From positions 1-62,089 of the forward strand of contig DF237486.1 of the NCBI GenBank assembly GCA_000708835.1: a stretch of 62,089 bases of DNA, read 5' to 3'. This DNA is from Klebsormidium nitens (lineage: Eukaryota; Plantae; Klebsormidiophyceae). The notes under the pieces were generated by a model that saw only the letters and a program-made list of their open reading frames with translations, made no database searches and was not told the DNA's origin. Within the stretch, counting starts at the first letter, position 1. Each line of letters starts with the position of its first letter. Shown piece by piece: positions 6,974 to 49,827 of this stretch. The position numbers and the translations under genes were made by a program.

Positions 6974-9779
6974 CTAGTCCAACTCTAAGAAAGCCTTACG
7001 CCGCCTGTTTCTCCGCGAAACAATGAACCGGACCGCCCCGAACAGCTGTCGCACAATGGTCCATAACAGACACACCCCGATGTATGCCCAGAAGCTCCTG
7101 AACGCGGCAATAACCAGAGAAAAGGGAAACATGCCTATTCCCAGCAGGCCAAAGGCGATCCCCAGCCAGGACGGCTTCCCCTGAAGTGTCGCTCGGACGG
7201 ACGGCCACAACGTCCGCACGGCCGTCGCCCCGGCAATCCCATAGGGCCACAGTTTGATGCCGAGCAGCTTGAACTTCCCAAGAGCTTTGCCAGCGCCAGG
7301 ACGAAGACAGCGATACCGCAGACGTTGAGGACGCGCGTTAAGACATTGAGCAGGTTTTCGAACCACAGGTCGTTGTCGACCTCCTGCTGAACGTACGAAA
7401 GAAACNNNNNNNNNNNNNNNNNNNNNNNNNNNNNNNNNNNNNNNNNNNNNNNNNNNNNNNNNNNNNNNNNNNNNNNNNNNNNNNNNNNNNNNNNNNNNNN
7501 NNNNNNNNNNNNNNNNNNNNNNNNNNNNNNNNNNNNNNNNNNNNNNNNNNNNNNNNNNNNNNNNNNNNNNNNNNNNNNNNNNNNNNNNNNNNNNNNNNNN
7601 NNNNNNNNNNNNNNNNNNNNNNNNNNNNNNNNNNNNNNNNNNNNNNNNNNNNNNNNNNNNNNNNNNNNNNNNNNNNNNNNNNNNNNNNNNNNNNNNNNNN
7701 NNNNNNNNNNNNNNNNNNNNNNNNNNNNNNNNNNNNNNNNNNNNNNNNNNNNNNNNNNNNNNNNNNNNNNNNNNNNNNNNNNNNNNNNNNNNNNNNNNNN
7801 NNNNNNNNNNNNNNNNNNNNNNNNNNNNNNNNNNNNNNNNNNNNNNNNNNNNNNNNNNNNNNNNNNNNNNNNNNNNNNNNNNNNNNNNNNNNNNNNNNNN
7901 NNNNNNNNNNNNNNNNNNNNNNNNNNNNNNNNNNNNNNNNNNNNNNNNNNNNNNNNNNNNNNNNNNNNNNNNNNNNNNNNNNNNNNNNNNNNNNNNNNNN
8001 NNNNNNNNNNNNNNNNNNNNNNNNNNNNNNNNGCTGAACGTACGAAAGAAACGGCTGGGCAAGTCCCTCTTCACGGTCATCGACGGTCTCCTTTGCAGCC
8101 TTCGCCTGGAGTCGAGACGGCCTCTGGTGCGGCACAATCTTCAACCGGGCACCCTGTGCCGAAGCGCACAGCTCTGTCAGCTTCGAGCACAGACTCTGCG
8201 CCGCCCGTGCATTCCCAGCAAACCATTCCCTCCTAAGGTGGATCACAAGCTCGGCGGAGTTCTCGCTTCTGGCTAGAAAGCGGGCGGCAGCGGCAACACT
8301 CTCAGGAAAGAAGGGGCAGTCGAGCTCCAGGCTTCGTAGGTACCTGCTCTGCTGCAGCGCCGTTGAATCCAGAATGCTTCCAGCATCAGGGTTGCTCAGA
8401 AGTGGACGCGAGCCAAAATCCCTCTGTTGAAAGGACAGGGAGCCCACACCGCATTCCCCCAGCAGCTCGCACAACTCGGACAGCTCTGACGGAGACATCT
8501 GGCAGTTGCGGAAAGCAAGGCGAAGCTTGGCTGGCGATTCCTGGAGATACTCTCGCATGTCGTCAGAGAGCCGGCCACTGGATGTTATGCGCATTCTTTC
8601 GAAGACAACGGTTGAGGCCGCCATCTAGGGTCTGACACTGCCCTTGCGCAGCCACTCAGGCCGGCCACTTGTCATTGCAATTTCGCTTGCGTGCTGAAGA
8701 AGCGTCAGGATCTCCTCGTCGAACCAGCGGCAAGGTGCTTCTGAGCCCTCGTATTCGAAGAAGCGAGACTCCCTTGTGTAATCAAGAAGAGATTGCTCCG
8801 GGTCATACACGAAGTCATGTCCTTGCTCGAGCAGGCTCTTCGGATTGAAGCCCTTCAAGAATCTGCCTTTCCACCCTGGATACAAGCCATTTATCAGCAG
8901 GTTTGCTTGGATCGTGCAACTCACGGCCAAGATTCTTAGGAGACTGACCACGTGATGTAGAGGGAAAGGAGGGTCACTGTCGCCGTCCATTTTGAGGTCC
9001 ACTTTGAATCCTGCTGCTGAGAGTCCAAGGACGCATGCTGCCACAAACTCTGGGGACAACTTTGCGGTCCCACAAAAGTCAAGGGTAACAGCAGCCTTTC
9101 CAGTATCTTTTTGATAAGCAATGCCTTTCTTGCGGAGGTTTGCAAGCAGCCCCTTGAATGAGCCAACAGGATCTCTCAGCAAGTGCAGCAGAGGTTGAAT
9201 AAACGACTGCATTGAGGATAAAAACCGCGGGATGCGCTTGACTTGCTCGCTGAACCAGGCTATGCAGGTTTCTACGAGGTATCTGATTGGACCCCAAGAG
9301 TCAGGGAAGACTTTGTGGCACCGCAAACACGCGTAAGTGGCCAGGGAAAGCATGTCACCTCCCATGGAAGGGAGGTTATCCCATAGGAGGGCAAGGAGCA
9401 GGGGATTTGAAACCAAGTTAGGGTAGCCATGGGCCGTCTGACCAAGGACACCGTTCCACGAGCTGGGAGCTTGCTGCATGAAACTGAGGTTCATGGTGTG
9501 CAGAATCTTTGCCATGCTCCCTACTTGATATGAAAATTGCTGCGAACCAGAGTTGAGTCGTTCTAGAAGGCGTAGCAGCTGCTTTTCTGTGAGATGCAGG
9601 GCTTGCATGGCGCGCAGGTTCAAATCCTGCCACAGCTCCGGCTCTCTCAGCGCGTCTCGATGGCTCTTGTCCACCAGCTCCATTTGCAAGCGGTCCTGCA
9701 GACTGATGTCTTTCAAGACGATTCGAAGTACATCCCTGGGAAGCGCGGACAGCGCCCTAGCTGCCGCCATGCGCTCCAT
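6974..9779 (-). pseudogene. F-box/LRR-like/TM family, copy 1 (disrupted)
   Basis: F-box LPRDVLRIVLKDISLQDRLQMELVDKSHRDALREPELW; highly similar to copy 3 throughout. In-frame TAG at 8625-8627 (GSVRP*MAASTVVF vs GSVRPRIAAPTVVF). After collapsing the duplicated gap flanks, a frameshift near 7285 moves the TM tail into another frame. Confidence 0.8.
7406..8032. other. Assembly gap with duplicated flanks (20 bp)
   Basis: gctgaacgtacgaaagaaac at 7386-7405 and at 8033-8052. Confidence 0.9.
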
Positions 9780-25800: not shown

Positions 25801-26612
25801 AAAATTGCCGCCTTCTGTAATAATTCGCCTGAGAGGTTCACCTACCTTGGCATGCTCAGTCAGNNNNNNNNNNNNNNNNNNNNNNNNNNNNNNNNNNNNN
25901 NNNNNNNNNNNNNNNNNNNNNNNNNNNNNNNNNNNNNNNNNNNNNNNNNNNNNNNNNNNNNNNNNNNNNNNNNNNNNNNNNNNNNNNNNNNNNNNNNNNN
26001 NNNNNNNNNNNNNNNNNNNNNNNNNNNNNNNNNNNNNNNNNNNNNNNNNNNNNNNNNNNNNNNNNNNNNNNNNNNNNNNNNNNNNNNNNNNNNNNNNNNN
26101 NNNNNNNNNNNNNNNNNNNNNNNNNNNNNNNNNNNNNNNNNNNNNNNNNNNNNNNNNNNNNNNNNNNNNNNNNNNNNNNNNNNNNNNNNNNNNNNNNNNN
26201 NNNNNNNNNNNNNNNNNNNNNNNNNNNNNNNNNNNNNNNNNNNNNNNNNNNNNNNNNNNNNNNNNNNNNNNNNNNNNNNNNNNNNNNNNNNNNNNNNNNN
26301 NNNNNNNNNNNNNNNNNNNNNNNNAATTCGCCTGAGAGGTTCACCTACCTTGGCATGCTCAGTCAGAAACAAAGCGGTCCCCAGCAAGGCATCGCCAGCG
26401 GGGGTCCCTTCAGGCCTGTCAACTAGCCCCCTGCCGCTGCTTCTCTCCCCACCCTCCCTTGGCTTCTGAACATGCACTCTATTCCTCTTCTTCGTTACGG
26501 GAAAGTACTTCGTGATCCGCTTCTGGTCCTGTGAGACCACCATGGGCTGTGAAATCTGCGAAACGGGCGTGGTGCATGGCTCCCCACTGACCTGGGTGCC
26601 TGGGCTCTCCAT
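19869..26612 (-). CDS. Atypical C5-cytosine DNA methyltransferase of the DNMT1/MET1 superfamily, with BAH domain; multi-exon
   Basis: Motif I LDLCAGTGALG (~24030); motifs II-III AVDTEK/DPLSTCVKNIPKIGVF; motif IV GDVEMITAGLPCQSFSGAN (~23110); motif VI PRYIIVEEV; motif VIII LGYQTRWQILLAALFGAPQNRFR followed by AAQIGEKLPQVAVPTHRAF; TRD-like LFNHKVFH and GRLPRDG; motifs IX-X SPRENALLQTFP and YRQVGNAVP. A BAH-like segment lies at ~24850-25260. The start codon is uncertain. Confidence 0.9.
21177..21480 (-). repeat. Coding tandem repeat (~75 bp / 25 aa, ~5 degenerate units) inside the MTase insertion
   Basis: Units begin (E/G)Q(P/H)(S/G)GA: EQPSGALEDAAGG, GQPGVGDG, GQHSGALKKSGSS, GQPGGAVENIRSS, GQPSGALKRKRS. 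Confidence 0.8.
25864..26324. other. Assembly gap with duplicated flanks (42 bp)
   Basis: 25822-25863 is identical to 26325-26366. Confidence 0.9.
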
Positions 26613-31618: not shown

Positions 31619-34600
31619 GTAGCCTTGAAATGACACTGCTGCTCGTCCTTTGTGTCTGACGCACTTTTTCTGCACAATAAACACATTTCACGGCCTTTAC
31701 TGCACGTCTGCCGGGTCAACTTTGCTCACGAGGTTCTTGGATTCTCAGCTAAGCCCGCAGACAAGTCTGCATAGGATTCTGCCGGTGCTTCAAATGTTAA
31801 GTTCGCGGTCCTTTCCTTTCATATGCTGGCATAGCTTCAATTCATGACTCTTGATGCAATGTCAGAGGCATGTTCAATGAAGGAGTGTAGGATCAAAGGT
31901 CGTCCATCTTTATCGCGCCTAGCGCAGCTGGCCATGGCCATCCTGGCATGCACAACTCTATGTCCAGAAAAGCTCAAAGTACAATCATATGCACTGCACT
32001 AAACATTGTCAACATCCGACGTCCAGATGCGGAATGCATGCATGTGAGTACGTACTGGTTAATGCATATGCAGCGGCGCTGGCGACGCGGTATATATGAG
32101 AATCTCGTGCTGGAAAACCTTGTAACATGGTGCTCACGGATGGCCGGCATGTGACCAAACCACTGATGCATGATCGAAACTCCAAACCAACGTGATCTTC
32201 ATTCACTTAATGATCGCATGAATTAGCTAGGCGGTCTCATGGGTCTGCGCCAGGAGGCGCCTGGATCCGGCAACGCATGAACATTCAATACAATCAGATA
32301 AGGTATGATGTGCACTGCGACCTCTGAGTCTATGTATACATTGACCTGCATATAACAGCGTCCACAGTGACACCAGTGATCCTGAGAAAGTGGCTATACC
32401 AAAAGTATAGTTCGATGATGGCCACTGCCCGTACAAAGTAGCGCCCCCAAGGAGACCCACGTGAGTTCGAAAGAATGAGCTGGAGTATCATGTGATTTAT
32501 ATGGCACGGAACACGACCATATACCACTGGCTCCGGCGTCAAATTAATGCCTCCGCATCGAATCTAGTTCAAAGCGGCGGGGCACATAAAGCACGGCAGT
32601 ATAATCGCAATAATCCTGGTTTGACTCAAATCAAACCAAGACGACACTCCATCTGATCGAGTCAAACCAGGACCACATTCCGTCTGAGAGGCCCCTGTCG
32701 AATCCGTACAGCTCCTACAGTTCTCCTTTCGTGTCCGATGGCTGGACTTCTGGCGTCCCGCGTGCCGTCTCCCGCTTCTTTCTCCTGTACAGATAAAGTA
32801 AGCACTACTGTCATGGGCATGAGAGAAATACACTACCCTTCCCATTTGACGAGCGCCTTAGACCTGAGAATTTATGCAAAGCCAGAACTACGTCGTCGGA
32901 CAATCCATTCAAGCTTTGCCAACCTGCACTCATGTCCGCACAACCAGACAGGCTTAGTTTCCATCATGATGAGAAAGTTGCGCAGGCGAAAGGCGAGTAT
33001 TGCGGAGACTTACGGCCGGCACGCTCGGCTCAGCTTTCGACATAGAAGCGTCTCAATGTCGTCTATCCCATCTTCCCTTATGGCTGTCGCCAGCTGCACC
33101 ACCAGGCCGAGAGTGTGACGATCCATTGTTAGCGTGATGGGGAGCGTATCCCAATGTCGAGTCATTCAAGAGCGACATGAAATCTCCAGTTTAAAGTTTA
33201 TGGAAATCCTGCTCGATGATCTTGAGGCTCTATCTAATTCTCAAGTTGTTGATCTGCTGACGTGTGGTGCTATTCATTATAGTCCATCGATCCAAAGCAT
33301 GACACGGTAGCACAGATTGAGGTTGAGCCAGGAGACTCACTTCCTCTTCCACCCGTTCAAGAAGCCGATCGCAGTAAGTTTGTATTTCTTTGGACTGTGC
33401 TTCGGCCAGTCGTTTTAAGGCTGGATCCGCTGCACGAGTGGGGTGATATTAGAAGGCGGGCTGATTGTTGAAGATCTTTCGACCTCTGCCAAAACAGCCC
33501 AATTTGCTTGCCAGACGGTCACCGACAATCTTCGAGGTCAGACATTCTGGCTTTAGATTCGAGAGAGAATATCTTCGCCCTTTGCTGACACGAGATTTGA
33601 TCTCAGAGCATCCTAATGCTCAGTAATACCTATGAGAAAGGGAAAGGGAAATCATCGAGAATGAGCACTTACAAGGTGACTCCGTTGCTGTTGGTTTCCG
33701 CCATACAGTCTGGCAAAACGAAGGAATTGTTAGAAACATAGACATAACGAACTCTAGGTGTACAAATGACACATCCAAGCTGAGAGGAAGCCGATGGTGG
33801 GCCCATCAGGGAAGTCCTTTCTAAAATGAACCGAACGAGGAGAATGGTGGCGTCCTTTTGACATTTGTGAGTTTATAACAAAGACGCGAACAATGGACGT
33901 CACGACGTTTTGAAAAGGGCTTCATTCTTGAAGACAGTAAGTCGCCAGGTTCACTTGGAAATATATATCTACTTTTCTCATGGGTGCAACTGAATCGCTT
34001 TTATGGGTGCATCTTTCCTTAATCGATTGAATCCCTCACCTCGTTTAGCCGGTAAGCCTTTGTGGCTTTGCACAAGCCCTCAAGCAGTTCAAACGCGCGC
34101 AACTCGCTTACTCTGCAAGGCACCGCGAAGCTGAACTTGAGAATCTTGGACACCTTGACTTAAATCAAAGGTTTGAGGCAGGGGGATAACTCGCGTCTCC
34201 ATAAGCTCCAACACCCAAAAGAGCCCTCCTCAGCATAAAAACAGGGATTGCTTACCTGTAGTCAATCACGCGCCCTTCTCTCTGGCCTTTCGAGTCGAGC
34301 CGGTGTCTGAGATCAATATGGTTGCGAGGTTTCTCCTGCAAGCCACCATCTTCACACTATTACGCTGTGCGATTGGATGTTTGCTTCTAAGAGTATACTA
34401 CAAACAAAGAAAAGCCTACATGAGAATCATTAATCCAAACCAGCATCTAAGAACAACATGACTTGGACAAGTTCCCGCAGCAGAAAGAGCGCCGCCTGCT
34501 CTTGGATGCAAAACCCTGATTGACAGATGATGGTCTTGAACTCAGTCATTGATCTCTAGGCTTTCTGACAATTTGTGCCTGGGTTCTGTTGAGCCATGGC

Positions 34601-36586
34601 AGATTCTGAAAATGGAAAAAGGCAGGAGGCAAATAGACGAAAGTAACTCACATTCTTTATAGCTGTCGTCAACTCTTCCTGCACAAACGACTCCTTGATC
34701 TCAGACATGTATCACATAAACAGCGGCAAACATGAAACAACACAGAACGAACCGCACACTTGGCAACAAATTCTCTCTTTGGCAACCAAGGCGGCAAGTT
34801 TTCGCTAAGCTTGACAATTTGCATCACATGGGCAGTGATACCCTGCACTGGCTCATTAAGAAGATTGCCGATGAAGTCAGGCGAAGACATTACGACGATA
34901 ACCAGTCTGGTCGCCTCCATATACTTAGCCCCTCTTTCGCAGCCGAATGCATCATGGTGGTGGTACTCTATGAGATAGTCAAATTTCAGACGCATTGCTG
35001 TACACGACACGGTACGTCCTCGGAACTAGCTAAGTAGCTTACTGCAATAGCTTGGCAAGCCGAGCATTCACTCTCAATCGCTTCAATGACCTGGAATGCC
35101 AACATCAAATTGACGATCAGAAGCGCCAAGCATATGCTCCGTCCCATATTTACCAGCCTCTGTCAGACCATCAGATCATGTCAACGGAGTCCTTGGAACG
35201 CTGTTTTGAGCGAGAGTCAATCTTCGTGAAAGGAGAGTGACAGGTGACACGCGGCCCCTGGGCCTCAGGGCTTCCTGCGCTACAGATGTTGTTCTCTCCT
35301 TGCAAATTGGCAACTTTGTCTCTACTCGAAGCGAGTCGCACCAGGATAGAAAATTCAAAACGGTTGTGGCATAAGCGGAGGGGGAAAGGACACTTTCCTC
35401 GCTCATGAAAGTATTTTGAAATACCCTGGGAGAAGAGTCGAGGTGACTTTGACTCTCGAGCGCGCGCCTCGTGTAGGCTTACAACTACCCGGGAATTTGA
35501 TATGTCAGCCGCTGTTGGCCTATTACTAATACAAATTGCTTTGCGGTCTCTCAAAATTCTGCTGTTGTAGAATCAACTCTGTATCTGGCAGATTCCTGAC
35601 TGTATCTGGCTCTCCGTCTCCCGCCAAATTCTCGCCGTTGTCTTGTGAGAAGATGGCTGGCAGGCCCAGCCTAGAATAGTAGCATGACTCATTCCTGTTC
35701 AGGGGCGCCGTCATTGCTCAAAGGACAGTCCGAGCCATTTGCCACATGAGAAGAAGCATTGTCTTCAGCCTGATCATAGGCGCACATGGGCTGTTAGGTA
35801 TGGTTGCTGAACCACACTTGGGAGGCCACACTTGGGTGGGATTTCACGTCGACCACGACAGCATACTTTCCGCTTAAAGTTCAGCACCTTGCTGCCCAGG
35901 TAGGAGGCGAATCATTCATCAGGCCGTTTTGCCTTGCCTGCTCTTTGGTTGTAGGAAAGTGCTCGACTTGCAGATGTCCTCTAGGGTGCAGGCACCACGC
36001 CGTTGTGAGAAACGTTTTAAGGTTTTTTTCTAGTAGCAAGGGCCCATAGGCAGTGTGCGTTGAAGCAAGACTTTATATGCTGTTTCATTTCGAGACCGTC
36101 GCATTTTGCAGAAAGCATGAGAAGTTGCCAGGTTCCGGGCTCAATGCTGGAGTGCCTCTTTGGGGATTTCTCAAGGGTTTTCAAAGATTGGAGCTAGGGT
36201 GTTCAGTACTTCCGTAAACTCCACCGCAGCTCCATCCTTCTTGAGCTGGCTTGACGTTGGCAAATAGGATAAGCTTGAAAACAGCTGTAGGCATATCAGT
36301 TATGGTCGAGCAATCATGGTACCGTTGGATAATCAGCAACCCACTCAACGGGCCACATCCAATTGGAGCAGTTTGACAAGGGTTTCTCGGTTTGTTACTG
36401 TAGTTGGCTGCCCCTCTGGAAAGCCTTGTGAGCCTCCTGATTGCTCGCAGCCTACGATTGCTTGATCCCCTTCTCAGCCCATGCCACGAATGGCCCCAAA
36501 GATGACACACTATGCGGCAACGACAAAATATTTCAGAAAGCATTTGCTCAGGTTCCCTTCTTGTGCTTGGCTGCGCAGTTTGAAGC

Positions 36587-39500
36587 ATGGCGTCTAGCGA
36601 GGAGGACATGCCGGACCTGGCGGAGGACAGCTCAGGGGAGTCCGAGGACGACGAGAAGCCCGACACTCGGCAGAAGTACCCTGCGCACCAACCTCAAGCC
36701 CCTTTCAATGCCAAGCCCTCAGCACAAGACAATAATGCCGACGATGATGACGACCTTCCTGAGTTGCTCGATGGTGAGGCAATCTGCAGCAGTGAAGCAG
36801 AAAGACTCCAGGAGTGTTCTTGTAGAGGTCGTTCGTTCCTCCGCATGGTGGCTTTCTTTGGGACTGCAAAAAACGGGTCTGGCCCAGTTGGATAATTTCC
36901 TTTACTTGAGTGGTTTGAGGATCTGAAGAAAGGATTCGGTTCCAGGGGTTCTTTGTGCTAGCGCTGCAGCATTGATCAGAGCCATTAGTTGAGTGTGCTG
37001 TGTAACAGATAGGGCGAGCCCAATTGAGTCACTAGAGTGTTTTCTGTTTGCAGGTGGGAGTGATGAGGAAGAAGACGACGAAGACGATGACGAGCCCCCC
37101 CCGCTGGTGGGCGAGTCTGACGAAGACGAGGACTCCGATGATGAGCGGAGCAACGGACGGGGTTACAATAAGACGGTCAGCTACCACTTCAGTTCAAACC
37201 CTTTCATGTGCCCTCTGGGAGCTGCCAGGAGAGTTGGCGTGGTAAAGGCATGCTTTTGTCTCAAGAAGATGATGCACTCTGGACCCTTACAGGGTGTGAG
37301 AAGCAGTGGAGTGCCTCGTTGCCCAGATCTTGATTACATAGACGAGGATTGTGAACGTTTTGGTTAACCTCAAAAACTGGACACCGCCATGCAGTTTGCT
37401 TACGTGATCCTTATCAGTTGGAGCTTGAGTTTCGACTCGAAGCCTCTTATACTTTGGGCCTTCTGCAGAAACCCGATGGGCCATCTCTGCCGGGCTTGAA
37501 GGCGGGCTTCTTTGCCAAGCCCAAGCCCCCACCCCAGCCTGCCCCCCCGCCTGCGCCAGCTGCCGCTTCGAGACCCTCCCCTGCGCCAGCAGCCGCGCAA
37601 CCCCAAGGCCCCTCATCCTTCAGTTTCAATTCTACTCCGAAATTTGCGGCCAAGGCGGCCCCCCCGCCTGCTGCCAAAGCTGCGCCCCCGCCGGCGGGGA
37701 AGCCCCCACCCAGGCGGAAGGACGGAGAAGTGGAGGAAGCGTCTGATGGGAATGACTCGGAAGAGGTGCCGGACCTGTTGGAAGCGGTGAGCTGTCTTTA
37801 ATGCAAGCAGCATCTATGCGCTTGCTAGCCCAGTCTCTCAATCTAAAGTTTATTTGCAGTACTCTCGCAAGCTGTGTCCGCCCATGCTATTTTGCCGATC
37901 AGTGACATAATGCATCTTGCGAATGGAAACAACACGAGTGTCCATGCATATGCCAGCTGTCCGCCCCTGTTATGACTTTAGTAATGTCCTTCATAACCTT
38001 GTCCTTGGTTCAACAGGATGACGAAGACGAGGACTCGGGGTCGGAACCACCCGACAGTGAACCAGAACAGGAGTCAGACGAGGAAGAAGAGCACGCCCGA
38101 CCAACCTACGGTGCGCAGCGGGGGGGCCCGCGCAGGGGCAGCTTCTACCCCGACTTTGAGTCGGAGGAACGGGCGATCGAGGAGCGACGGAAGCGGGAAG
38201 CAGAACGGAAACGGAAAGAGGAGGAGCGGGCGCGGGAAAGAGCCGAGCGGAAACGGAGAGAACAAGAGGAGAAGAAGCGGCGGCAAGCGGAGGCGAAGAA
38301 GCGCCAGATGGAGGACGCGGCCGTTTACGCAAACTCTCCCGAGGCGCGGGAGTTGGCGGAGCAAGCGCGGCTGCGCGCCGAGGCGGAGATGGAGGAGAAG
38401 CGGCTGCAGATGGGGCTCGGCCCGCGCGAGAAGACGCTGAACGAGGGCGAGGAAGAAATTGGGCCGGCGTACTTTTGCCGGGGGACGCACTGCCCCGGGA
38501 ACCAGCGCATGCTGACGAAAACACAGGAGTACATCGAGTTCCGGTGCACGGAGCGGTGTTTGCTGCTGTACCACACGGGGGATTGTCACCGGAAGGACGT
38601 GAAGCTGAAAATGGAGAGAGAGCACGGGGTGTGGAAGGAGGAAGAAGGGGCGCGCTGCATCACGCCGGACTGCCCAGGGACGCTCACCAACGGGACCAAG
38701 TGGAACAGGTTCGGGAAAGTGTCGTACCAGGTCAGTGCGCACCGTCGCTGGTTGGTGTTTCGTATCTAGAACGGGCGATATGTGAATGTTCCGACGTGCT
38801 GCTTTTCCGCTATGATAGCCCTCAGGGGCTTGTATCGGCCTGTCTCAGTGTTCGTTAAGCCAGTCGCAGACATCCAACTTCGTCATCTTCCTTAGACGTT
38901 TCTTTGGCACGCTTCCTAGAAGATCTTTTTCTGAGAATCCAGATTCGAAAGGCAGTGAAGTTTGTACTTTCACGGAGGTCCAGGATTCTTCAGCTTCGTC
39001 TGGTTTTGGCGGCTAACCGCATTTGCCGCTTGCCCCAGATCATCGACCCCGAGAAGTACGAGAAGAAGCGGCGCGAGAAGGAGCGGCTGCGCGCAGAGGA
39101 GAAGGCGGCCAAGCAGGCGGCCAAGGCGGCGGCGGCGTCAAAGCGGTCCAAGAAGCAAGAGAAGCACGACGAGGAGGAGCTGGAAGGCTTCGCAAAGTTC
39201 CGGCGGTCCACGAAGAGCCGAACGTTCACGAACTTCAGCTTCCAGGGCGCGACACAGGCCGTCGCCACAGACACAGCCGCAGAGCCGATCCCGGAGGAAG
39301 CCCCGGTAGAAGCGAAGGAGACCAAAGCAGAGGCAGAGGAGGCGCCCAGGAAGAGGGGCAAGAAGAAGAACGCAGATGGGGGGGCGCCGGTGGTAGAGGC
39401 AAATGGGGGGGCCGGCGGGGCGGGCTCGAGTGGGGGGCACGAGGAGGGCAGCGGGGGAGGGGGAGCGCCGGGCATCGCGGTACTGGTAAAGGCACCCCTG

Positions 39501-42500
39501 GTAAGTTCTCCCGACAGTATCATGCACCAATGGCTTTTTAAAAATGCCTCCAGTAACCTTGTCGTCGCGTGGATCCTCAGCAGACATCTACTCCACGCCC
39601 CAAGAGCATCTGTGCTTACCATACATTATTGGAAGCTCCTCTGCACTGCTTACACGGATGTAACTTTTCGGCCAAGCAGAGCCCTTTCAAAGGATCGGCC
39701 AAACCTTCCAAGACCAAGACAGCAACCGCAAAACCCATCGTGCCTTTGGAACAGCAACACCTTAAGGATTGCCATAGTTTTGCCCTAGTCCAAGGTGATG
39801 ATTCCGATTATCTAGGCATCATCCAATGCCCATTTGCGGCCACAAGGGTTCAATAATCCAAAAAGGCCACCGGAATTTCAAAAACTGTCATAATCAGCCT
39901 CAAAACGCGTTTCCAGACAAACACTACAGCAGTCAGATTCTGGTCGGAAGCACCATTGATTTCCACCTTCCTATGCTGGATTGTTGGAGAATGAATCCAG
40001 ATCAAGTCATTTGGAATCGTCACTACTGTGTACGGCTGTGTTTGTGATGTCAGCGGCCGGTGGCGGAGCGCGAGCTGGATGACGGGGAGGTGACGGAGTA
40101 CCGCAAGAAGGAGGACGAGGACAACGTGTTCACGCTGGGGAACAAGGACCGCACCAAGGACAAGGGCAAGCAGAAGGTGAGAAACGGGAAACAGGAACAA
40201 GAGGACAACGATGAGAAGAGGGCTAATGGTGTTTCTCATCCCTGGCAACCAGAGGGCCTTTCGTGGGTCAAAGGGCACAAGCAACGGCGTTGGGGGACCT
40301 ACGTGTAAAGCATTGGTTTTTAAGTCCACTTTACTTTGAGAAGGTGAACTTGTTGACATAGGTTTTAGGCACCAGCTCACGACATACGGAAGGCCTCGTC
40401 ACTTCTAAAAGTTCTTGACTTTTTCCAAATCAAAAAGGGGCCGGCATGCCCGGCGTTTCGGAACGTGCATGCTACAAGGGGCGTGTGCTTTGTCAGCTGC
40501 TCACCGAACGTGCGGAATCAAACCAATTGCCCGAATGCTTGGGCAAAGGAACAACGGACCGTTGGTAGGAAGTTCCGTAACTTAGAAAACATGCGGCGAA
40601 TCCAATCCGATCGAATTGAGCCCGCCGCAATTTGAAGACCGAGACGATCGTCCCACGGGGCGACCTTGCCCCGCCTTGTGCCCTGCAGGTGGACGCCGTT
40701 CCGGAGCCCCCTCCCGCCGCAGCCGCCAAGGGCAAGGGCAAGAAGAAGGGCATGACGCTGAGCATCAACGAGTTCATCACCTCCGACGACCCCGATCCGC
40801 CGCTCTCTTTGCGCCCGCAAGGAGCCCCGAGCGCTTCCCGCCCCTTCATCAACGACCCGGGCNNNNNNNNNNNNNNNNNNNNCGACTCGCACGGACCGCC
40901 GATGCACGGAACTGCCGATGCACGGACCGCACATGCACGGACCCCCCATGCACGGACCGGTTCCGGTGGTCCACAGGCAGCCCCAAGAGGACTTTCCGGT
41001 AGGAGTTGCTTCCCTTCAGGCTGCGGAAACGTGGGAATGTCGGCTTGGAAACGGGCATTGCCTTCGGTCGGCCTCTCGTCCCTTTTTTGTTTGCTGGAAA
41101 TAATAAAGAAGGAAGGGCCGGATGCAGGGCGCATTGGAAGTCCAAGTAGGCAAGGACCTGTGTCGCACGGTGTCTACTCTGCGGGAGCCCGTGTGGCGGT
41201 AGGTTCGACATCAGACAATGCTTTGTCTTTCGATGATGGGATGCAGCATACTGTGAGCGGTTTTGAAGATCTCCCGCGGTACCCACTTTCACATCGACTT
41301 GTTTCCTTTCTACCCAGGAGCTACACAGGGGCCCTGGCGGGACGGCCACGACTCCAAGCGCCCCTGGGTTCCAAGAGCGGCCCAAAGACCCATTCTCGCT
41401 GGCGCTGGACTCGATCCGTATCCGGGATACGGAGGTGAGGGACCCATTTAAAAGGGGCAACCAGAGGATCTCGAGAAGCTGGGTTCCCTTTTCAAACGCA
41501 AGATTCTGACGCTGTCTTGGCGTCCCAGCCAAATGCTGAATTGTTTCCGGAAAATTACTCACAATTTGCAGAGCGGACGTCGTAGTATCTGGTGCATGTC
41601 GATACTCTGTCAATAGCTCTCTGTGCCGGCAGCACTGTCACACATTCATTGCTTGCAGTCTGGAGCTTTCCATCTGAGGGAGACAGTGATACACATCCTT
41701 TTGCGCTGCAGCCGACGCGGCATCTGGTGCTGGAGGACGTGGACGGTCGTGCGGACGACGAGGAGATTCGGAGCCTGCTGTGGGAGTATGGCATGGTGGA
41801 GGAGATGACGCGCTTCCGGGGCAGGGAAATTGCGTTCGTCACCATGAGGTAAGCGCGCCCGTGAGAAAGCTTTCAGCAGGGAACATGATCAATAGAAGCT
41901 GACGTCAGCGTGAAACTGTGAATAGGCGCAAGCTTTTAGCTTTCCTCCTGTTTCTGACAGGGAGCAGCGGCTTGGTCTTGTTCTGTTCGCAGCCAAGTTG
42001 GCCAGAGGTCGCTGCGTCAGCGTCCGTCTTTACTCGATTTCGTTGGTGCATGCTCAAGTTTGTTATGGATGCCGTCAAAGTCCAGCCATGAAATAAGACA
42101 TTGCCACATGTGCGCTCCAGTAACAGCAGCTCACCTCACGCGCACTGGCGCATCTTGTGAGCATATTTGGCCGAGCGTCTTTCTTCCTGCTGCTTACAGT
42201 CCTGCTAAACTCTTATCGGTGCCACGTGCAGAACGGTCGAGGAGGCCGCCTCCGCCCGGTTACTGCTGCCCAACAGGAGCCTCAAGAACCGCAAGGTCAA
42301 GCTGGACAGCGTCAGCCAGGTCAGCGCCAGCCCCCCTCAGTCGCATTATTGCCCCAGTGAACGCTGTTCTGTTACGCCATGTTGAAACCAAGGGCAGTGC
42401 TCAGAGTCCTGGTTTTCAGGTTACTGCTGCCCGATGGNNNNNNNNNNNNNNNNNNNNNNNNNNNNNNNNNNNNNNNNNNNNNNNNNNNNNNNNNNNNNNN

Positions 42501-45500
42501 NNNNNNNNNNNNNNNNNNNNNNNNNNNNNNNNNNNNNNNNNNNNNNNNNNNNNNNNNNNNNNNNNNNNNNNNNNNNNNNNNNNNNNNNNNNNNNNNNNNN
42601 NNNNNNNNNNNNNNNNNNNNNNNNNNNNNNNNNNNNNNNNNNNNNNNNNNNNNNNNNNNNNNNNNNNNNNNNNNNNNNNNNNNNNNNNNNNNNNNNNNNN
42701 NNNNNNNNNNNNNNNNNNNNNNNNNNNNNNNNNNNNNNNNNNNNNNNNNNNNNNNNNNNNNNNNNNNNNNNNNNNNNNNNNNNNNNNNNNNNNNNNNNNN
42801 NNNNNNNNNNNNNNNNNNNNNNNNNNNNNNNNNNNNNNNNNNNNNNNNNNNNNNNNNNNNNNNNNNNNNNNNNNNNNNNNNNNNNNNNNNNNNNNNNNNN
42901 NNNNNNNNNNNNNNNNNNNNNNNNNNNNNNNNNNNNNNNNNNNNNNNNNNNNNNNNNNNNNNNNNNNNNNNNNNNNNNNNNNNNNNNNNNNNNNNNNNNN
43001 NNNNNNNNNNNNNNNNNNNNNNNNNNNNNNNNNNNNNNNNNNNNNNNNNNNNNNNNNNNNNNNNNNNNNNNNCAGAGTCCTGGTTTTCAGGTTACTGCTG
43101 CCCGATGGGATTTGTGCACAGAAGGCTTTGACCTTGCTGAGGATGCCCATTTAGGAGGAGGGTTTCTGCTTCCCTTTATCAAGACCTGGAGGTTCGTCGC
43201 ATCACAGAATCGTGTCACATCTGAGAGTCTGTTGGTTTGGTCACATTTCGCCCAACCAGACCGTCAGCAGATTGTTCGCATGACGTTCTTGAAAGTGCTC
43301 CTGGAAATCATCTTGACTCCGTTTTATGATTTACCCTCATATTGCTGATTCTGCGCCTGCAGCACCCGTCCCCCTCTTTCTTCGCCAACTACCAGCCCCA
43401 GTGGGCCGCTCACGACCTCATCACCCCCCGGACCAAGCGACCCTCCCCTCTCGCGGCGCCGTTCATTCCGGGGGGGGCGGGGCCCTCGCACCAGTCTCTC
43501 GACGGGTCGGAGCAGTGGGAAGAGTTCGAGTGGAGCGCAACTGGAGAAGACGCATTTGCCGCCGGCGGCGCGAGCGACTGGGGGAGCGAAGCCCCGGTCG
43601 GCAGTTTCGGCAGCTCCGGGGGAGAATTTGGATTGCGAGCAGCCGCCGCGAGGGGAAAGATGAAACCGGACGCACCGGAGTTTGTGCCGAAGTCGGTGCT
43701 TTTAGCGCAGACGAAACAGGAACCAAAGAGTGAGGCTAAGGCAGAAGCGAGCGGTTCGAAAGGGGAGAGCAGCGGCGCCGGGTCGAGCAGTGAAAGTGCG
43801 AGTTCTGCGAAAGTGGAGGAGGCGAGCAAGCGGCCGGTGTCCGCGCCAATGGACGAGAGAGAAGCAGTGGCGGGGATAAACGAGGCGAAGGGAAAAGAGG
43901 CTGTGGGGGAAAAGGAGACAGCGGATCGACCAGGTTCAGCGCCGCTGAGAGCGAGTGACCAAGCGAAAGGAAAGGGGATTGCTCTGGAGGAAGGGCGGCC
44001 GACGTCAGCGCCGAAAACGACGCCGCCGGCGGGCAAGGATGCCGGCACGGAGGAGCGGCCCACTTCCGCGCCGACCGCGGCCTCACCAAAGCGGAACGGA
44101 ATGGCAACGGAAGCGCTCACCGGGGGGGGCTCGTTCTCCAAGATGGAGTCGGCGAGAGACACACCGGCGGCAGGAACGTCCGGGCGAGAAGCGCTGACGT
44201 CATCAGGGGCGGCCAGATTGGACTCTGCCAGGGGCGTGCTGGGATCGGGCGGCGCGAGAATCGAACCGGGGAGAAGTTTGTTGGGACCGGGAAGTGGTCG
44301 GTTGGAGTCAGCGAGAGACCTGCTGGGGTCGGGGGGTGATACCCGGCCGCGGAGCACGTCCCCAGTGGTGCCGCTGCCTCCGTCCCTGCTAGCGGTGCAG
44401 GCGGGGCGGCTGCCGATGCTGAATCGGCCGTGCAACTTTGCAATGGGACAGGTGAGGCGGCTCCGGGCTGTAAGTGCTGTGGCGATTTCGGCAATGTGCG
44501 GTATTGTGAAAGGTTGGATGAGAAGCTTTGCGGGCAATCTTAAATCAAGACGCTTGAATGTCCTGACTAGTTCAATGCATCTGAGGTCATCCCGAGTCTT
44601 CGTTTTCCATGTTGGCATGCAAGCAGGTGCAAGCAGGGAGTGTGCTTCCGCAGGCTTCCGCTGTGAATTCAGCAGGGCCTACTCAAGATCAAAATTCAGG
44701 ACTTTTTCGTTTCATGTGGCTTCACGGAGTTGGCCTCTGGTCCGGAAGTTGAAATTTCCGCACGTCTGCACGTGGTTGGTTGTATCGTAGTATTGGCTCA
44801 GGACACTTATGAAGACTGTGTCGCACCCACCGAACCAAATCCCGGAGCGAATCCAGACCCCGTCTAAAGCGGAGTCCAGGAAATCGTTCTCTTGAAACTC
44901 CCTTACACAATCTTGCAACGACATTCGAATTCATATTTGTGTGCGTTCTTTGCCGCCAGATCATCGCGACGACAGCAGAAACGCTCAAAGTTCAATAATA
45001 AGAACCTTCGAATGGGATTGTCTCAAACTCTGTGCGCGCTCCTTGCCTCCAGATCATCGCGACAACCACGGAGACGCTGGCGCTGTACCAGGACAGCATC
45101 CGGCTGGACAGGGACCACCTGGTGCAGGGCTGCCAAATCATACCGCACGCGTGCGCGCTCTTCCTGTTCAACATCGAGGAGCTGGAACTGCACGGTTTCT
45201 ACGAGGCCACCTCCGGGTCGTACCTGCAGTGCCGAGACCCATGTCAGTTGTATTCCTTCTTTGCATTTGTTTCTTCCTGTTCGTCCTTGCTTGCCTCGTA
45301 TCCATGTCAGCTATTTTCCCTTCTTTGCATTTGCGACTTCTTGTTCGTCCTTGCTTGCGTCATATCCACGTCAGCTTTCGTTCCTCTCTTTGTTTGTTGG
45401 TCCTTATTGTTCCTTGCTTTTCCTTGTATGTTGACTTCGACCCATCTTGGCGCTTCAGCTTTTCCCCGGCTCTTACGCTGACTCGATTTGTCTGCAATAC

Positions 45501-48500
45501 TCTCGTCTTGCTTCAGCTTACATTTCTCAGCAAGTGGACGTCATCTGGTTCTTGATACGCAATTTCGGGATTTGTGGCAGCGTCTCCTTTCTCAACTTCC
45601 GGATCTTGTGTTCTGCTAGTTCAATTCGAACTGCTTTGGGAGTCAGTGTCTATTGCCCCTCTCCGCTTTGTTGTCCGTTCCGGAAGCAATTTACCGACTA
45701 GAATTCAGGAATTCTGACTACCTTCACCTGCTCTTTTTCCTTCAGTTCACCAAATTGTGCAAACACGTCTGTCACCTTGAAAGATGTCCTGACCGAAGTT
45801 CGACATGAAACGTCCGTCCACTTCCTCGTTCAATCTGGAAGTGTTGCTGACGGTTTCTGCACTGAAGCAGGACAGCTTGGCGAAGTCCTAACATTCATAT
45901 CGAGATTGTGTTCTTTTGACAGGTGATCGTGCTTTCTCGGACAGATGATTGCGGGCATAACGACAAAAAGGGTTCAAAAGCGATGGCCCTCGTTGTCTTT
46001 CGTTGCTGCCTTACTTTCGCCAGATCTTCCTGCTACAAGAACTTGCACACTTGCAACATGAAGCGGAGGACACTGGGACGTTAGCATGACCCTAAAACTC
46101 GAGTTCTTTCCTGACTGCTCTCCCTTTGCCTGCGCAGACACGGGCATCATGTACGGCGTGGAGCAGCCCCACATCGCGTTCCGTTGCGTGCGCCGCTTCC
46201 CCGTCCCCCTCGGCCGCACCGAGATCGAGCCGCTCCTTCCCCCGGGCTGGTGGAACGCTGACACGTGGCTGCTTCCCCTGGTCCTGCCAGCGCTACAAAC
46301 CGAGATGCTGCTGCTCCTATTTGAGGACAAGGCCGAATACGAGGAGCGGAAAAAGCGGGGCTTCGCCGAAGAACTAGAGGGGCAGCTGGAGATTGCGCAG
46401 GCCGCGGCGGGGCCCCCTACCCCGCCGCTGCCCTCAGGGATCCCCCGGCCGACGCCCGCGAATGCGGTGGTTGCCGCGCAGAGTCCCCCTACGGCAGCAC
46501 CCAAGGAGGAAGCGCTGTCGGCGTCTGCTGCGGTCCCGGCGACCATCGCGGCAGCGGCCCGGGGCGCGGCGGAAAATGGAACCGGAAACAAAGCGGCGAA
46601 CGGAATGGTTGAGGAAATCGGCGAGGGAAGTGGGTCGGCGGGAGCGAAGACCGAGATTCCAGGTGCCAGCTCGGGGGTGCCGGAAAAAGCGCCCGTGGCG
46701 AGTGCGAGCGGTTTGCAAGCAGCCAAGGAAGATCGGCCGGCAAGCGCAAAGGCCAGCGGAACGGAAGCGCCGAAAGCAGAAGCGAACGGCCGTGTGGCAA
46801 CCCCCCCGAAAGCGGCGCCGGCGCAGCCCTCCTCTTCCGGCAGCGCCAAGGAGCCCGCCGCTAAGCCAAGTTCGCCCTCCACCCCCCTCTCGCCCCAGCC
46901 TTCTCCATCCCCCCTCCACGAAACCGCAACCAGTGGGCGCGGGGCCCCCGATGACATCACCAGCATTCTGGCTGAGATCACCTCCGCTGCTTCGGGGTGG
47001 GGTGGTGAAAGTCCTACTATTCAGCCGGCTGCGTCCATCCCCCCGAAAAGCGCCCCCGGCAACCCCCGGACTCCCCCTCCTGGCGTTCAAACGGAAGAGC
47101 GGGTTCCAACCCCCCAGAAACGGGAAGGAGCGCGGCCGGCGAGCGGGACACCGGGGGCGGAAGAGCGCAGCACCTCGCTGCCTACGGAAGGAGGGGGGGC
47201 GAGCACAGCGGAGGCGGCGGCGCCCAACATGCAGTCGATCCTGGACATGCTCCTGCCCAAGGTGAGGGCAGCTGAGAGATTGGGAGAATAGCAACTCTCC
47301 TTGACTGAAGAATTGCACAGTTGGTGGAATTGGGCCGGTTCAAGATTGGCATCCCCTTCCTTCTATCCAGGTGGTGAGTGTTACTGTTAGAGCGTACAGC
47401 AATCCGGTCCGTGTCGCGTTTTTGCGGCCTGTTCGGGACCAGCCCGACGTCGGAAGTTGAGCAAAAGTGGCGCGCATGCTTTGTCTTCCTTGTTCGTCCG
47501 TAGATTAAAGTCCTTCTCCAGAGTAGCACTTCGGGTTTGCTCGTAAAGCGGGCACACTTCCAAGTACCTACTTTGCGTGGCCCAAGCTTCGAGCAACGAA
47601 AAGGCTGGGCGACGTTCTCCATTTCCCAGTTGCATCTCCAACTTCGAAGCTCTCTTGCTCTCTCTTCTTACCTTTCCTCTTCTCTGTTGCCAGGCTGCCC
47701 CCTCTGCCCCTGCGCCAGCCCCTCCCGTCTCTGCTCCCACCCCCCGCCGGCGTTCGCCCCTACCGACCCCCTGTGAAATACAACCCCCTGGGACAGGCGC
47801 CCCCCTCCTCCAATGGCCGCGTCTCGACCCCCCCGGCCCGAGAGTCCCCACCCCCCCTGGTCGACGAGCGGACCGCGTGCAAGCTGTGCTGGGTGCGCAA
47901 GGCGGACTTCTTCATCAAGGAGTGCGGTGAGTGCCTCAAGTGCACAGGACAGCAAGGACCATCTTTGAACATGCTTGGTTCGTTCGGTGAATCAGGAAGA
48001 GTCGTTTCCGTTTAGCAGACTCGATGACTTTGAGAGTTCCATTTAGCAAGCTAAGCCTTTTCAACTTGCTTCCTTTGACAAACAAGAAGGTTGAGCAGTC
48101 TTGACAAACATTTTGATAGAGACGGGCAGCTTTCCTTGCGATGCACAGGCGTACTGCTGCTCTTGCATGGTTGTACGGTTTTGTTCTTTGAAATCCCGAG
48201 CAGACCTGGCAACCAGACCTGGCAACCAGACCTGGCAAGACTGGGGTCATTCGCTTGAACGGCTATCGTGCGCAACTTTCGCATTAGTTGACAAGGAAGC
48301 AAAAGCTCTGCTTACATGGACCAGAACACTGTTGCGAACTCGGACGCTGCGTTTCAACGCTGTGCTTCGCTTTATTGTCAAAAAGAGTGCCAAACAATGG
48401 CAACACTTGACAAAGTCTTGCTCGCTTGCTCGACTCCCTGCATACATCCCGGTCTGTGCGTCTTACCAATAGCATTTCTCTCCTGCCCTCGTCCTTGCAG

Positions 48501-48622
48501 GCCATATGGGCCCGTGCTTGTCCTGTTTTGAGGACCCTCGTATCAACTCGAACCACTGCCCCCAGTGCCGCCGGAAGATCGCCACTGGTGACCCGACCAA
48601 GTTCATTCGCATGTTTAGATAG
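36587..48622 (+). CDS. ~1,700-aa multidomain putative RNA-associated RING E3 ligase (acidic region, TTC3/DZIP3-like Cys/His domain, RRM, PAM2-like motif, DCD, C3HC4 RING), ~14 exons
   Basis: Exons ~36587-36774, 37054-37174, 37469-37786, 38017-38730, 39039-39500, 40054-40176, 40689-40998, 41712-41848, 42232-42319, 43363-44451, 45053-~45217, 46138-47261, 47719-47926, 48501-48622. Most junctions join in phase. RRM: HLVLEDVD...EIAFVTMRTVEEAASA. PAM2-like: MKPDAPEFVP. DCD: LFLFNIEELELHGFYEATS. RING: CKLC...ECGHMGPCLSC...CPQCRRKI. The DCD junction near 45217/46138 is unresolved. Confidence 0.78.
40903..40962 (+). repeat. Short coding repeat (atgcacggacc, MHGP) x3-4
   Basis: Encodes MHGT...MHGPHMHGPPMHGP next to the 20-N gap. 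Confidence 0.7.
42438..43072. other. Assembly gap with duplicated flanks (36 bp)
   Basis: 42402-42437 is identical to 43073-43108. Confidence 0.9.
45240..45425. repeat. Intronic tandem repeat, ~63 bp x3
   Basis: Three degenerate units of ca(t/c)gtcag...ttctttgcatttg...ttcgtccttgcttgc.tc.tatc. Confidence 0.75.
48202..48238. repeat. Intronic 13-bp tandem repeat x3
   Basis: cagacctggcaac occurs about three times. Confidence 0.8.
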
Positions 48623-49827
48623 CCTTTGCGAGTCGAGGGGAGCGCGCAACGTTTACCAGTGTATCCTGAACGTATGGAGTTGACCATGGCACAAGTAGGA
48701 TGTCTACATAACCGTATCGAATGGGCGTATCCTCGAGCTGGTTACTTCTTGCTGAAACGTGAGTGGAAGAGACTTGTTTGGGGCCAAGAGCATTTGATCC
48801 AGAGGAATGGAAGGGAGGATTCAAAAGTCTTCGTGCGAAGGAGTAGACTCAAGTTCTGGTAGGATTCGCTATTGCTGTGTATGAAGAACAAGCCCTGTGC
48901 ATGCAGCACGAGCAGGCAGATCGTAGATGGTCGCGCGGTTCTTAGTTTGTAGGACATTCGAGCAGTCGTTGAGAATTCCGGTTTGGCAGTAGTGACTGGA
49001 AGGAACCAACTTCAAGCTAGACCGGTCCGTTGCCCGACAATATATTGCAAGGTCCCAATCCAATGGCAAGACTGACTGCACTTCGCCGCCTAGCTGCTGG
49101 CTGCATCCTCAGCGTGGCTCAGTGGATCTAGCTTTCATGCGACCCATGTGACATGCCAATTGCAGACCCCGTCATTGCTTGGACTACTAGCTAAGCGTGC
49201 GGTATATATATCCGACATTGTAGCGGCCCTCATGAATCAACGTCCCTAGTGTTTGCACGTGCACATGCTTCTCGTCAGCAATTTGAAGCTATTGGCCATA
49301 TGCAGATGTGCATGTGATCATATGTGGCAGCGCGTCCTACGTGTTCTGTACGATGGGCTGTAGATGCCGGGTGCCGCCTCCGACGGCCGGGAAACCCAAG
49401 CAACACAGCATGCCGGCCCATGCATGGGCCGGTGTGAGCCCTTTGATGCACGTTATGTAGATAATCGATTGGATAGTCAGAGTCATCTCCTTTTCTAAGT
49501 AACGTTACAACTCACCATGCCCGCTCACGGCAAGCCGAGTGACTGGGTTCACTTATTTAAGGTTCGCTTAAGCACCCAAACCGATCCAGCCAACTGCAAC
49601 TCGGAATAAGGTTGCAGCTCCAAAAGGCTCAGGCGCTGAGCTGCCCGCTCACGGCACATGAGCCACGTCCCTGAAATCTGATGCAATTGCCTGTGGTAAT
49701 AATAGCTAGGACCTCAAGGTGGCGCGCTGGCATTCGCCCGCCTAAGCAATAGTCAAATGTACACATTCCCACGAATCTCCTCACTTATATAGCCGGCAGA
49801 AGTATAGTACACAATCCCAGAAGCATC

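Follow-up and report, generated by a model that had tools for sequence, protein, structure and literature searches.

Our analysis concerns a 62,089-nucleotide stretch of the streptophyte alga Klebsormidium nitens (contig DF237486.1 of assembly GCA_000708835.1, positions 1 to 62,089), hereafter called the window. It holds what is probably one expressed gene of 15 exons, encoding an RNA-binding ubiquitin ligase that would dock on poly(A)-binding protein (PABP) and carry a DCD domain for modified bases as well as a RING. The product contains, one after the other, a TTC3/DZIP3-type Cys/His domain, an RRM, PAM2-like motifs, a DCD-like domain and a C-terminal RING. These five modules had been named, in this order and as parts of one gene, in an earlier sequence-only reading, and all of them were found. 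The protein represents a new domain architecture among RNA-binding RING E3 ligases. Relative to the public gene model only the RING is new, and it comes to light through the correction of an error in the genome assembly.

Transcript, reading frame and gene model

The locus corresponds to the annotated K. nitens gene KFL_005370080 (GAQ89571.1; UniProt A0A1Y1IKA1), which maps exactly onto the window. The 1700-residue public protein (P0008), named "hypothetical protein" or "RRM domain-containing protein", covers 36608-48531 on the forward strand, with GT..AG junctions. This model already unites the acidic N-terminus, the TTC3-like domain, the RRM, the peptide MKPDAPEFVP and the DCD-like region; it is without the RING, and a frame other than that of the sequence-only reading is used for its final 90 residues. 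The start codon proposed here, the ATG at 36587, lies seven codons upstream of the annotated start and is conserved in a second Klebsormidium species (MASSEEDMPDL...). The corrected translation, with an X placed at a 20-N gap in exon 7 and at the frameshift site described below, yields a protein of about 1,770-1,800 residues, mostly disordered and with six modules, namely the five above and a basic motif in exon 7 (Table 1).

Transcript evidence came from Logan contigs of four sequencing runs, each from a different study, that were placed on 43073-48900. Only about 60% of the words in this stretch occur in the contigs, and the introns are missing from them, which identifies them as transcript assemblies. 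Four GT..AG joints (44451/45053, 45242/46138, 47261/47694 and 47926/48501) are present in all four runs. A single contig (X8, record 11, 3808 nt) spans all of these joints, ends past 48900 and extends 665 nt upstream of exon 11, an extension that ranges from 340 to 825 nt over the contigs. The RNA sequence upstream of 43360 reads AACCGCAAGGTCAAGCTGGACAGCGTCAGC and is identical to the end of the RRM exon at 42319, so that 42319 is spliced to 43363. One spliced transcript runs from the RRM exon through the exons for PAM2 and DCD to the two RING exons, in line with the single transcript proposed earlier. In the 3' untranslated region (UTR) the RNA records measure 553-570 nt, of which 401 nt lie on 48500-48900.

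The assembled genome has the RING out of frame with the upstream exons when canonical splice sites are used. The idea of one spliced frame therefore holds for the mRNA and fails for the assembly: all four runs carry two extra bases behind 47739, within a run of C. With these bases frame 0 (AAPSAPAPAPPVSAP) enters frame 1 and continues as ...PPLVDERTACKLCWVRKADFFIKECG and, after splicing, as HMGPCLSCFEDPRINSNHCPQCRRKIATGDPTKFIRMFR up to the stop codon. In the second Klebsormidium species, in which two abutting contigs (L001 and L002) of one Logan assembly (SRR23617307) cover the orthologous locus, exon 14 is read in one frame (AAAPAVSGPTPPAGVRPYRPP...CKLCW). The extra bases in the RNA imply that the genome assembly has a 2-bp deletion and that the RING is in frame in the mRNA. 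Because of this deletion the public model missed the RING, and its C-terminus is a frameshift artefact. An alternative acceptor that would restore the RING frame without any correction was also considered; the only AG in phase 0 sits inside the polypyrimidine tract, and the alternative was rejected because the RNA uses the acceptor at 47694 together with the 2-nt insertion.

The same observations bear on the view that the gene is degenerating or lineage-restricted, with a RING frame that is truly broken in the sequenced strain and a pseudo-exon at its end. This view would agree with the assembled genome, where the RING falls out of frame, and with the public protein, whose end is in another frame. 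However, the two bases occur in the RNA of all four studies, the genome of the relative has one frame, and the ratio of nonsynonymous to synonymous substitution rates (dN/dS) in the RING exons is 0.02-0.06, which makes a broken RING very improbable.

Two assembly gaps fall within the gene. The 635-N gap in intron 10, across which the RNA is spliced, is bordered by identical flanks of 36 bp (42402-42437 and 43073-43108). Without the Ns and the duplicated flank, intron 10 measures about 372 nt; the relative's intron has about 365 nt (L002 2484 to 2848). Identical flanks suggest that overlapping contig ends were scaffolded and not merged, which makes the 635-N gap an assembly artefact, with a true length that is most likely zero. 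All three long N-gaps of the scaffold (7406-8032, 25864-26324 and 42438-43072) have such flanks, of 20, 42 and 36 bp, respectively, and their true length is probably zero.

The 20-N gap is located inside exon 7, where the reading frame is 0 to the left of the gap and 1 to its right; the N count is an approximation. The counterpart of this exon in the second Klebsormidium species (L002 889-1164) stays open in one frame from VDAVPEPPP...KKKGMTLSINEF... to ...GPVPVVHRQPQEEFP. The public model bypasses the stretch through an artificial non-canonical intron. A few residues beside the gap remain uncertain. To the right of the gap, at 40883-40960, PMHG repeats occur in two frames, 7 nt apart, which suggests that there is low-quality sequence at the contig end besides the gap itself.

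A tandem copy was noticed around the acceptor of intron 11: the segments 44938-44985 and 45031-45078 are 93 nt apart and 81% identical. The upstream copy duplicates the acceptor and the first ~26 nt of exon 12 (CCAG, followed by ATCATCGCGAC...). The RNA uses the downstream acceptor; from the upstream one, translation would meet a stop after 13 codons. Intron 12 holds a second tandem repeat, of 64 nt (45255-45382).

Table 1. Features of the K. nitens gene, with positions in the window
Feature	Position	Strand	Location and basis
Whole coding region	36587..48622	+	15 exons, ~1772 residues plus those in the 20-N gap; mapping of the public protein, RNA contigs
Exons 1-5	36587-36773, 37054-37175, 37469-37786, 38017-38730, 39039-39500	+	Mapping of the public protein
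Exons 6-10	40054-40176, 40689-40998, 41318-41434, 41712-41848, 42232-42319	+	Mapping of the public protein
Exons 11-15	43363-44451, 45053-45242, 46138-47261, 47694-47926, 48501-48622	+	Mapping and RNA junctions
Acidic/Pro-rich N-terminus with repeated D-[LMV]-P-x-L motifs	36587..37786	+	Exons 1-3; conserved, dN/dS 0.04-0.13
E/K/R-rich coiled coil (putative)	38197..38409	+	Exon 4; read from the sequence
TTC3/DZIP3-type Cys/His domain	38473..38721	+	Exon 4; 8 conserved Cys/His; Pfam PF19179
Basic motif KKKGMTLSINEF (KGKGKKKGMTLSINEFI)	40728..40778	+	Exon 7; ~110 residues upstream of the RRM
20-N gap	40863..40882	.	Inside exon 7, PMHGP repeat region
RRM	41712..42319 (41712-41848 and 42232-42319)	+	Exons 9 and 10; RRM_1, PDB matches
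635-N gap	42438..43072	.	Intron 10; identical 36-bp flanks; RNA splices across
PAM2-pattern motif 1, PSPLAAPFIP	43441..43470	+	Strict fit to the pattern; conserved in the second Klebsormidium species
PAM2-like motif 2, MKPDAPEFVP	43660..43689	+	Pfam PAM2; identical in the second Klebsormidium species
DCD-like domain (EVE/YTH-type, PUA-like)	44404-44451, 45053-45242, 46138-46370	+	Three exons; Pfam, language model, shape search
Assembly error, 2 bases missing	47739..47740	+	All four RNA runs; single frame in the relative's genome
C3HC4 RING, split by intron 14	47878-47926 (CKLCWVRKADFFIKECG) and 48501-48568 (HMGPCLSCFEDPRINSNHCPQC)	+	Ligand pattern; RNA junction 47926/48501
17-residue tail after the RING, then stop codon	Stop 48620-48622	+	Corrected translation
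3' UTR	48623..48900	+	RNA contigs extend ~150 nt past 48900

Conservation and the unity of the gene

The second Klebsormidium species keeps all 15 exons in order, with 74-91% nucleotide identity in the exons and introns that cannot be aligned. In the comparison of the two species dN/dS lies between 0.02 and 0.34 for every exon tested in the proposed frames. Values are 0.02-0.16 for the domain exons (TTC3-like domain 0.06; RRM 0.08 and 0.16; PAM2 part 0.11; DCD 0.13 and 0.06; RING 0.06 and 0.02) and 0.28-0.34 for the disordered exons. Every exon is thus under purifying selection. In the second species a SufB/SufD gene (L001 1-2532) was found about 6 kb upstream of the orthologous start. Positions 34010-35161 of the window are conserved (70%) with L001 5661-6819, so that synteny reaches past the gene.

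A further orthologue, ME000058S08624 (P0003, 1318 residues), was found in Mesotaenium endlicherianum and is collinear with the K. nitens protein. Its order is acidic D-L-P-P-M repeats, TTC3-like domain, the motif GKKTVSLHQFI, RRM, three ...A-P-x-[FY]-V-[PA] motifs and DCD-like domain. Identity to the K. nitens protein is 41% in the TTC3-like domain, 31% in the RRM (E 9e-9) and 35% in the DCD-like domain (E 1e-21). The acidic N-termini of the Klebsormidium proteins and of the Mesotaenium protein (residues 150-230) all contain D-[LMV]-P-x-[LM] repeats within D/E runs, e.g. DLPELLD, EVPDLLE and DMPDLAE, with DLPPMTD occurring three times; these repeats may represent a conserved short linear motif.

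Orthologues were found only in Klebsormidium (two species) and Mesotaenium; the exhaustive search behind this distribution used the TTC3-like domain alone. Word-indexed searches, which are weak tests of distribution, returned nothing with the K. nitens DCD region, one Klebsormidium fragment with residues 812-1600, and the query itself with the Mesotaenium DCD region. Within these limited searches no land-plant relative was found, which suggests that the protein may be absent from land plants.

The annotated locus could also be a merger of two genes, an N-terminal one (acidic region, coiled coil, TTC3-like domain and K/E-rich part; exons 1-5 or 1-6) and a downstream one encoding the RRM, PAM2, DCD and RING part. 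The RNA was placed only on 43073-48900, the public and the Mesotaenium models are both predictions, and introns 5 and 6, of about 510-550 nt each, could accommodate a promoter. Yet all junctions of exons 1-7 are canonical and these exons form one frame without stops. Exons 8-10 amount to 342 nt, less than the longest upstream extension of the RNA (contig X9, 825 nt ahead of exon 11); this contig must hence enter exon 7 and, judging from the exon lengths, exon 6 or 5. Moreover, the single Mesotaenium model has the same order and can be aligned over the joins of exons 5, 6 and 7 (VLLVKDLG...KKTVSLHQF), and the second Klebsormidium species has the same exon set and order on its two abutting contigs. 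A merger is therefore rather improbable, and the locus is treated below as one gene.

Modules of the protein and their proposed function

The domain calls of the sequence-only reading found mixed backing in profile searches. Most Pfam scores lie at or below the thresholds and are borderline; other tests support the RRM, the DCD and the RING.

For the TTC3-like domain, the K. nitens protein scores 21.5-25.6 bits with PF19179 (25.6 on the exon) against a cut-off of 26.9. Fragments from relatives score 26.1 and 26.3 bits, and the Mesotaenium orthologue, with 27.2 bits, is just over the cut-off. With this domain as query, phmmer returned only seven matches among 1.84 billion representative proteins. 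The eight conserved Cys and His residues suggest two zinc sites. An AlphaFold2 model, made from an alignment of eight sequences, had a mean predicted local distance difference test (pLDDT) score of 41.7 and was unusable. Look-alikes according to a protein language model (0.76-0.85) were spread over RING, PHD, FANCL_C and Headcase clusters; this makes a kinship with RING- or PHD-type zinc modules no more than a lead. A TTC3/DZIP3-like Cys/His domain (19-21 bits in Pfam) was also noticed in the 165-residue proteins of a cluster (P0004) of 35 members, encoded on JGI/IMG metagenome contigs of up to 123 kb; two longer members add a weak Exo_endo_phos2 match.

The basic motif in front of the RRM is kept in the second Klebsormidium species and appears as GKKTVSLHQFI in Mesotaenium. 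KGKGKKKGMTLSINEFI may resemble the N-terminal domain of eIF4B. A language-model search with the exon that carries KKKGMTLSINEF gave no usable match. The RRM itself scores 18.3 bits with RRM_1 (PF00076; cut-off 20.7). A phmmer search of the PDB matched it over the whole domain to the RRM of chloroplast cS22 (E 1.4e-4), followed by the RRMs of CIRBP, GW182 and PTB. One aromatic residue is present in RNP1 (REIAFVTM) and none in RNP2 (LVLEDV).

PAM2 is a peptide that docks on the MLLE domain of PABP. Candidate motifs were sought with the pattern [LFP]-[NS]-[PIVTAFL]-x-A-x-x-[FW]-x-P, relaxed to allow M/K at positions 1/2 and Y at the aromatic position. PSPLAAPFIP meets the strict pattern and needs none of the relaxations; MKPDAPEFVP agrees with the pattern from position 3 to position 10 and depends on the relaxation for its first two residues. 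The latter peptide scores 15.6 bits with Pfam PAM2 (PF07145; cut-off 20) over profile positions 8-17 of 18, and a search of the PDB with the PAM2 peptide gave no match. In the same interval the Mesotaenium protein has LNAHAPEFVA, RIDAPPYVP and KIDALPYVP. Further downstream in exon 11 the disordered linker encoded at 43900-44400 (residues ~1005-1190 of the corrected protein) contains two repeated short motifs, [KDGE]-R-P-x-S-A-P (four copies) and R-[LI]-[DE]-x-[AG]-R-x-[LV]-L-G-x-G (three to four copies), both of which are kept in the second Klebsormidium species.

The DCD-like domain carries the core LFLFN...LHGFYEA and is without the FGLP motif. Its matches to Pfam DCD (PF10539; cut-off 27.8) are partial and all below threshold, with 21.4 bits on the exon, 16.9 on the public protein and 13.2, for another part of the profile, on the Mesotaenium protein. 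The language model placed the region with nine DCD clusters (score 0.92, 193 of 256 features shared). An AlphaFold2 model with a pLDDT of 56 has the element order E-H-E-H-E-E-E, and a shape search with this low-confidence model matched EVE, DCD-Kelch, DCD and YTH clusters at template modelling scores of 0.54-0.61. A profile search of the PDB with two DCD-like sequences returned only a chance match (FAP166, E 0.62). We take the region to be a divergent member of the DCD domains, within the EVE/YTH class. In the prediction of Bell, Wolf and Koonin the DCD belongs to the EVE-like modules that bind modified bases; in other eukaryotes they found it fused to YTH, KH, CCCH, mRNA-methyltransferase and eTudor domains (PMC7641849). 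The sequence-only reading had invoked stress and cell-death signalling by the DCD, which is the older view; the current one, drawn from bioinformatics, is that of an EVE/YTH-like reader of modified bases (PMC7641849), and this fits the RNA context better.

The RING obeys the ligand pattern C-x2-C-x(9-39)-C-x(1-3)-H-x(2-3)-C-x2-C-x(4-48)-C-x2-C at residues 1717-1755 of the corrected protein, and the ligands are fully kept in the second Klebsormidium species. The second RING exon alone scores 26.7 bits with Pfam zf-C3HC4_3 (cut-off 27; profile positions 17-47 of 49), and this half matches the RING of RNF4 with E 3.7e-4; the first half alone gave no profile match.

Combined in one chain, these modules suggest how the protein might work. 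Through its PAM2 peptides it would attach to the MLLE domain of PABP bound to poly(A) tails, and further contacts, to RNA or to the 40S subunit/ribosome, would be made by the RRM and the basic motif. A modified base in the RNA would be read by the DCD domain, and the C-terminal RING would recruit E2~ubiquitin and mark proteins of the bound messenger ribonucleoprotein (mRNP) or ribosome. A more specific proposal, a "reader-ligase" that is specific to streptophyte algae, in which the DCD reads a modified base in PABP-held polyadenylated mRNA and the RING ubiquitinates the mRNP or the ribosome, is put forward as a tentative idea with less than an even chance of being correct.

Several points weigh against an RNA-binding, PABP-docking ligase encoded by one gene. 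RNA support for exons 1-7 is indirect, and the evidence that the TTC3-like half belongs to the gene comes from the annotation, the reading frame, conservation and the Mesotaenium model. The RRM, PAM2 and DCD fall short of the curated Pfam cut-offs, as does the K. nitens TTC3-like domain, and the structure model of the DCD is of low confidence. With no aromatic residue in RNP2, the RRM may bind protein rather than RNA. In the second PAM2-like motif, M-K stands in place of the L-N of PAM2. The Mesotaenium model, which may be truncated, has no RING at its end. Finally, binding and ligase activity of DCD-RING proteins are themselves inferred.

In the main functional rival, the protein would be a real RING ligase in which the DCD and the RRM (then a pseudo-RRM) are protein-binding modules, and the PAM2-like strings would have arisen by chance in a disordered region. 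Tenhaken (2005) proposed the DCD as a protein-protein interaction module (PMC1182354), and the DCD protein NRP binds the fungal effector PevD1 (PMC5846053). The aromatic-free RNP2, the sub-threshold PAM2 score and the empty PDB motif search are also compatible with such a protein. On the other hand, several independent RNA- or mRNP-related modules occur in one chain, and Mesotaenium retains ...APEFV... in the interval from RRM to DCD, amid disordered sequence that cannot be aligned. In shape the DCD model resembles EVE and YTH clusters, and elsewhere the domain is joined to YTH, KH, CCCH and mRNA-methyltransferase domains (PMC7641849). We regard the protein-binding explanation as unlikely and prefer the RNA-binding ligase.

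Relation to known proteins and meaning

By function, the closest known proteins are the RNA-binding RING ligases of the MKRN1 and DZIP3 types. DZIP3 (hRUL138) and TTC3 share with the K. nitens protein the PF19179 family, the sole Pfam family matched by its Cys/His domain, the charged or coiled regions after this domain and a C-terminal RING. This likeness is borderline (25.6-27.2 bits) and limited to about 85 residues. The RING of the K. nitens protein is of the C3HC4 type (zf-C3HC4_3, RNF4-like) and not a RING-H2, and RRM, PAM2 and DCD are added. A Pfam scan of the public protein found neither a TPR nor a HEPN domain. Lacking TPR, HEPN and RING-H2, the protein is not counted as a member of the TTC3/DZIP3 family, with which it shares one borderline domain. 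hRUL138 binds RNA, and DZIP3 is reportedly listed among the RNA-binding ubiquitin ligases.

Other ligases of this kind (MKRN1, CNOT4, MEX3 and those with RNF4-type C-terminal RINGs) follow the same logic of one or more RNA-binding modules combined with a RING, and MKRN1 carries a PAM2 motif that docks on PABP. In contrast to them, the K. nitens protein is without CCCH or KH domains, has another module order and possesses the DCD and TTC3-like domains. Outside the RING there is no sequence relationship, and the RING half is closest to RNF4. A PAM2 motif adjoining an RRM in a long disordered protein is also known from the silencing domain of GW182/TNRC6 and from plant CID proteins. The RRM of GW182 is a weak PDB match to that of K. 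nitens (E 0.13), but in the latter protein the RRM precedes the PAM2 motifs, GW repeats are lacking and a ligase domain is present. A basic, K-rich ...SL..F motif with a single RRM about 110 residues later has the order of the N-terminal, 40S-binding domain and the RRM in eIF4B (PMC8762332), the motif likeness itself being putative; the K. nitens protein differs in having neither the DRYG nor the 7-repeat regions, and the best PDB matches of its RRM are cS22, CIRBP, GW182 and PTB and not eIF4B.

Plant DCD proteins have the domain at the C-terminus (NRP), in the centre (B2), at the N-terminus with or without ParB, or in DCD-Kelch proteins (PMC1182354). With these proteins (PMC1182354) and with the YTH-DCD-KH-CCCH, methyltransferase-DCD and eTudor-DCD fusions (PMC7641849) the K. 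nitens protein has in common the DCD-type domain and its likeness in shape to EVE and YTH. Chromist and choanoflagellate fusions likewise place the domain among RNA-related modules. None of the described DCD architectures has a RING, RRM, PAM2 or TTC3-like partner (PMC1182354, PMC7641849), and the terms "RRM" and "Klebsormidium" do not occur in the text of PMC7641849. Full-text literature searches found no paper or family with this domain combination. The claim that no such protein had been described thus stands for the literature; it needs qualification in that the gene model GAQ89571.1, with all modules but the RING, was already public.

The correction of the public gene model recovers the predicted catalytic domain, which an assembly frameshift had hidden. 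Since 2005 DCD proteins have been tied to development and stress in plants and to programmed cell death, and the sole mechanistic proposal for the domain is computational (PMC7641849). Here a natural fusion combines this poorly understood plant domain with an RRM, putative PABP-docking peptides and a RING in a single chain. As the host is an early-diverging streptophyte alga that can be cultured, it offers a testable system for RNA binding by the DCD and for the substrates of the RING. If true, the reader-ligase would be the first direct link between plant DCD proteins, RNA modification and ubiquitin signalling, and the fusion would serve as a "Rosetta-stone" clue that the canonical plant DCD proteins (NRP and B2) act on RNA.

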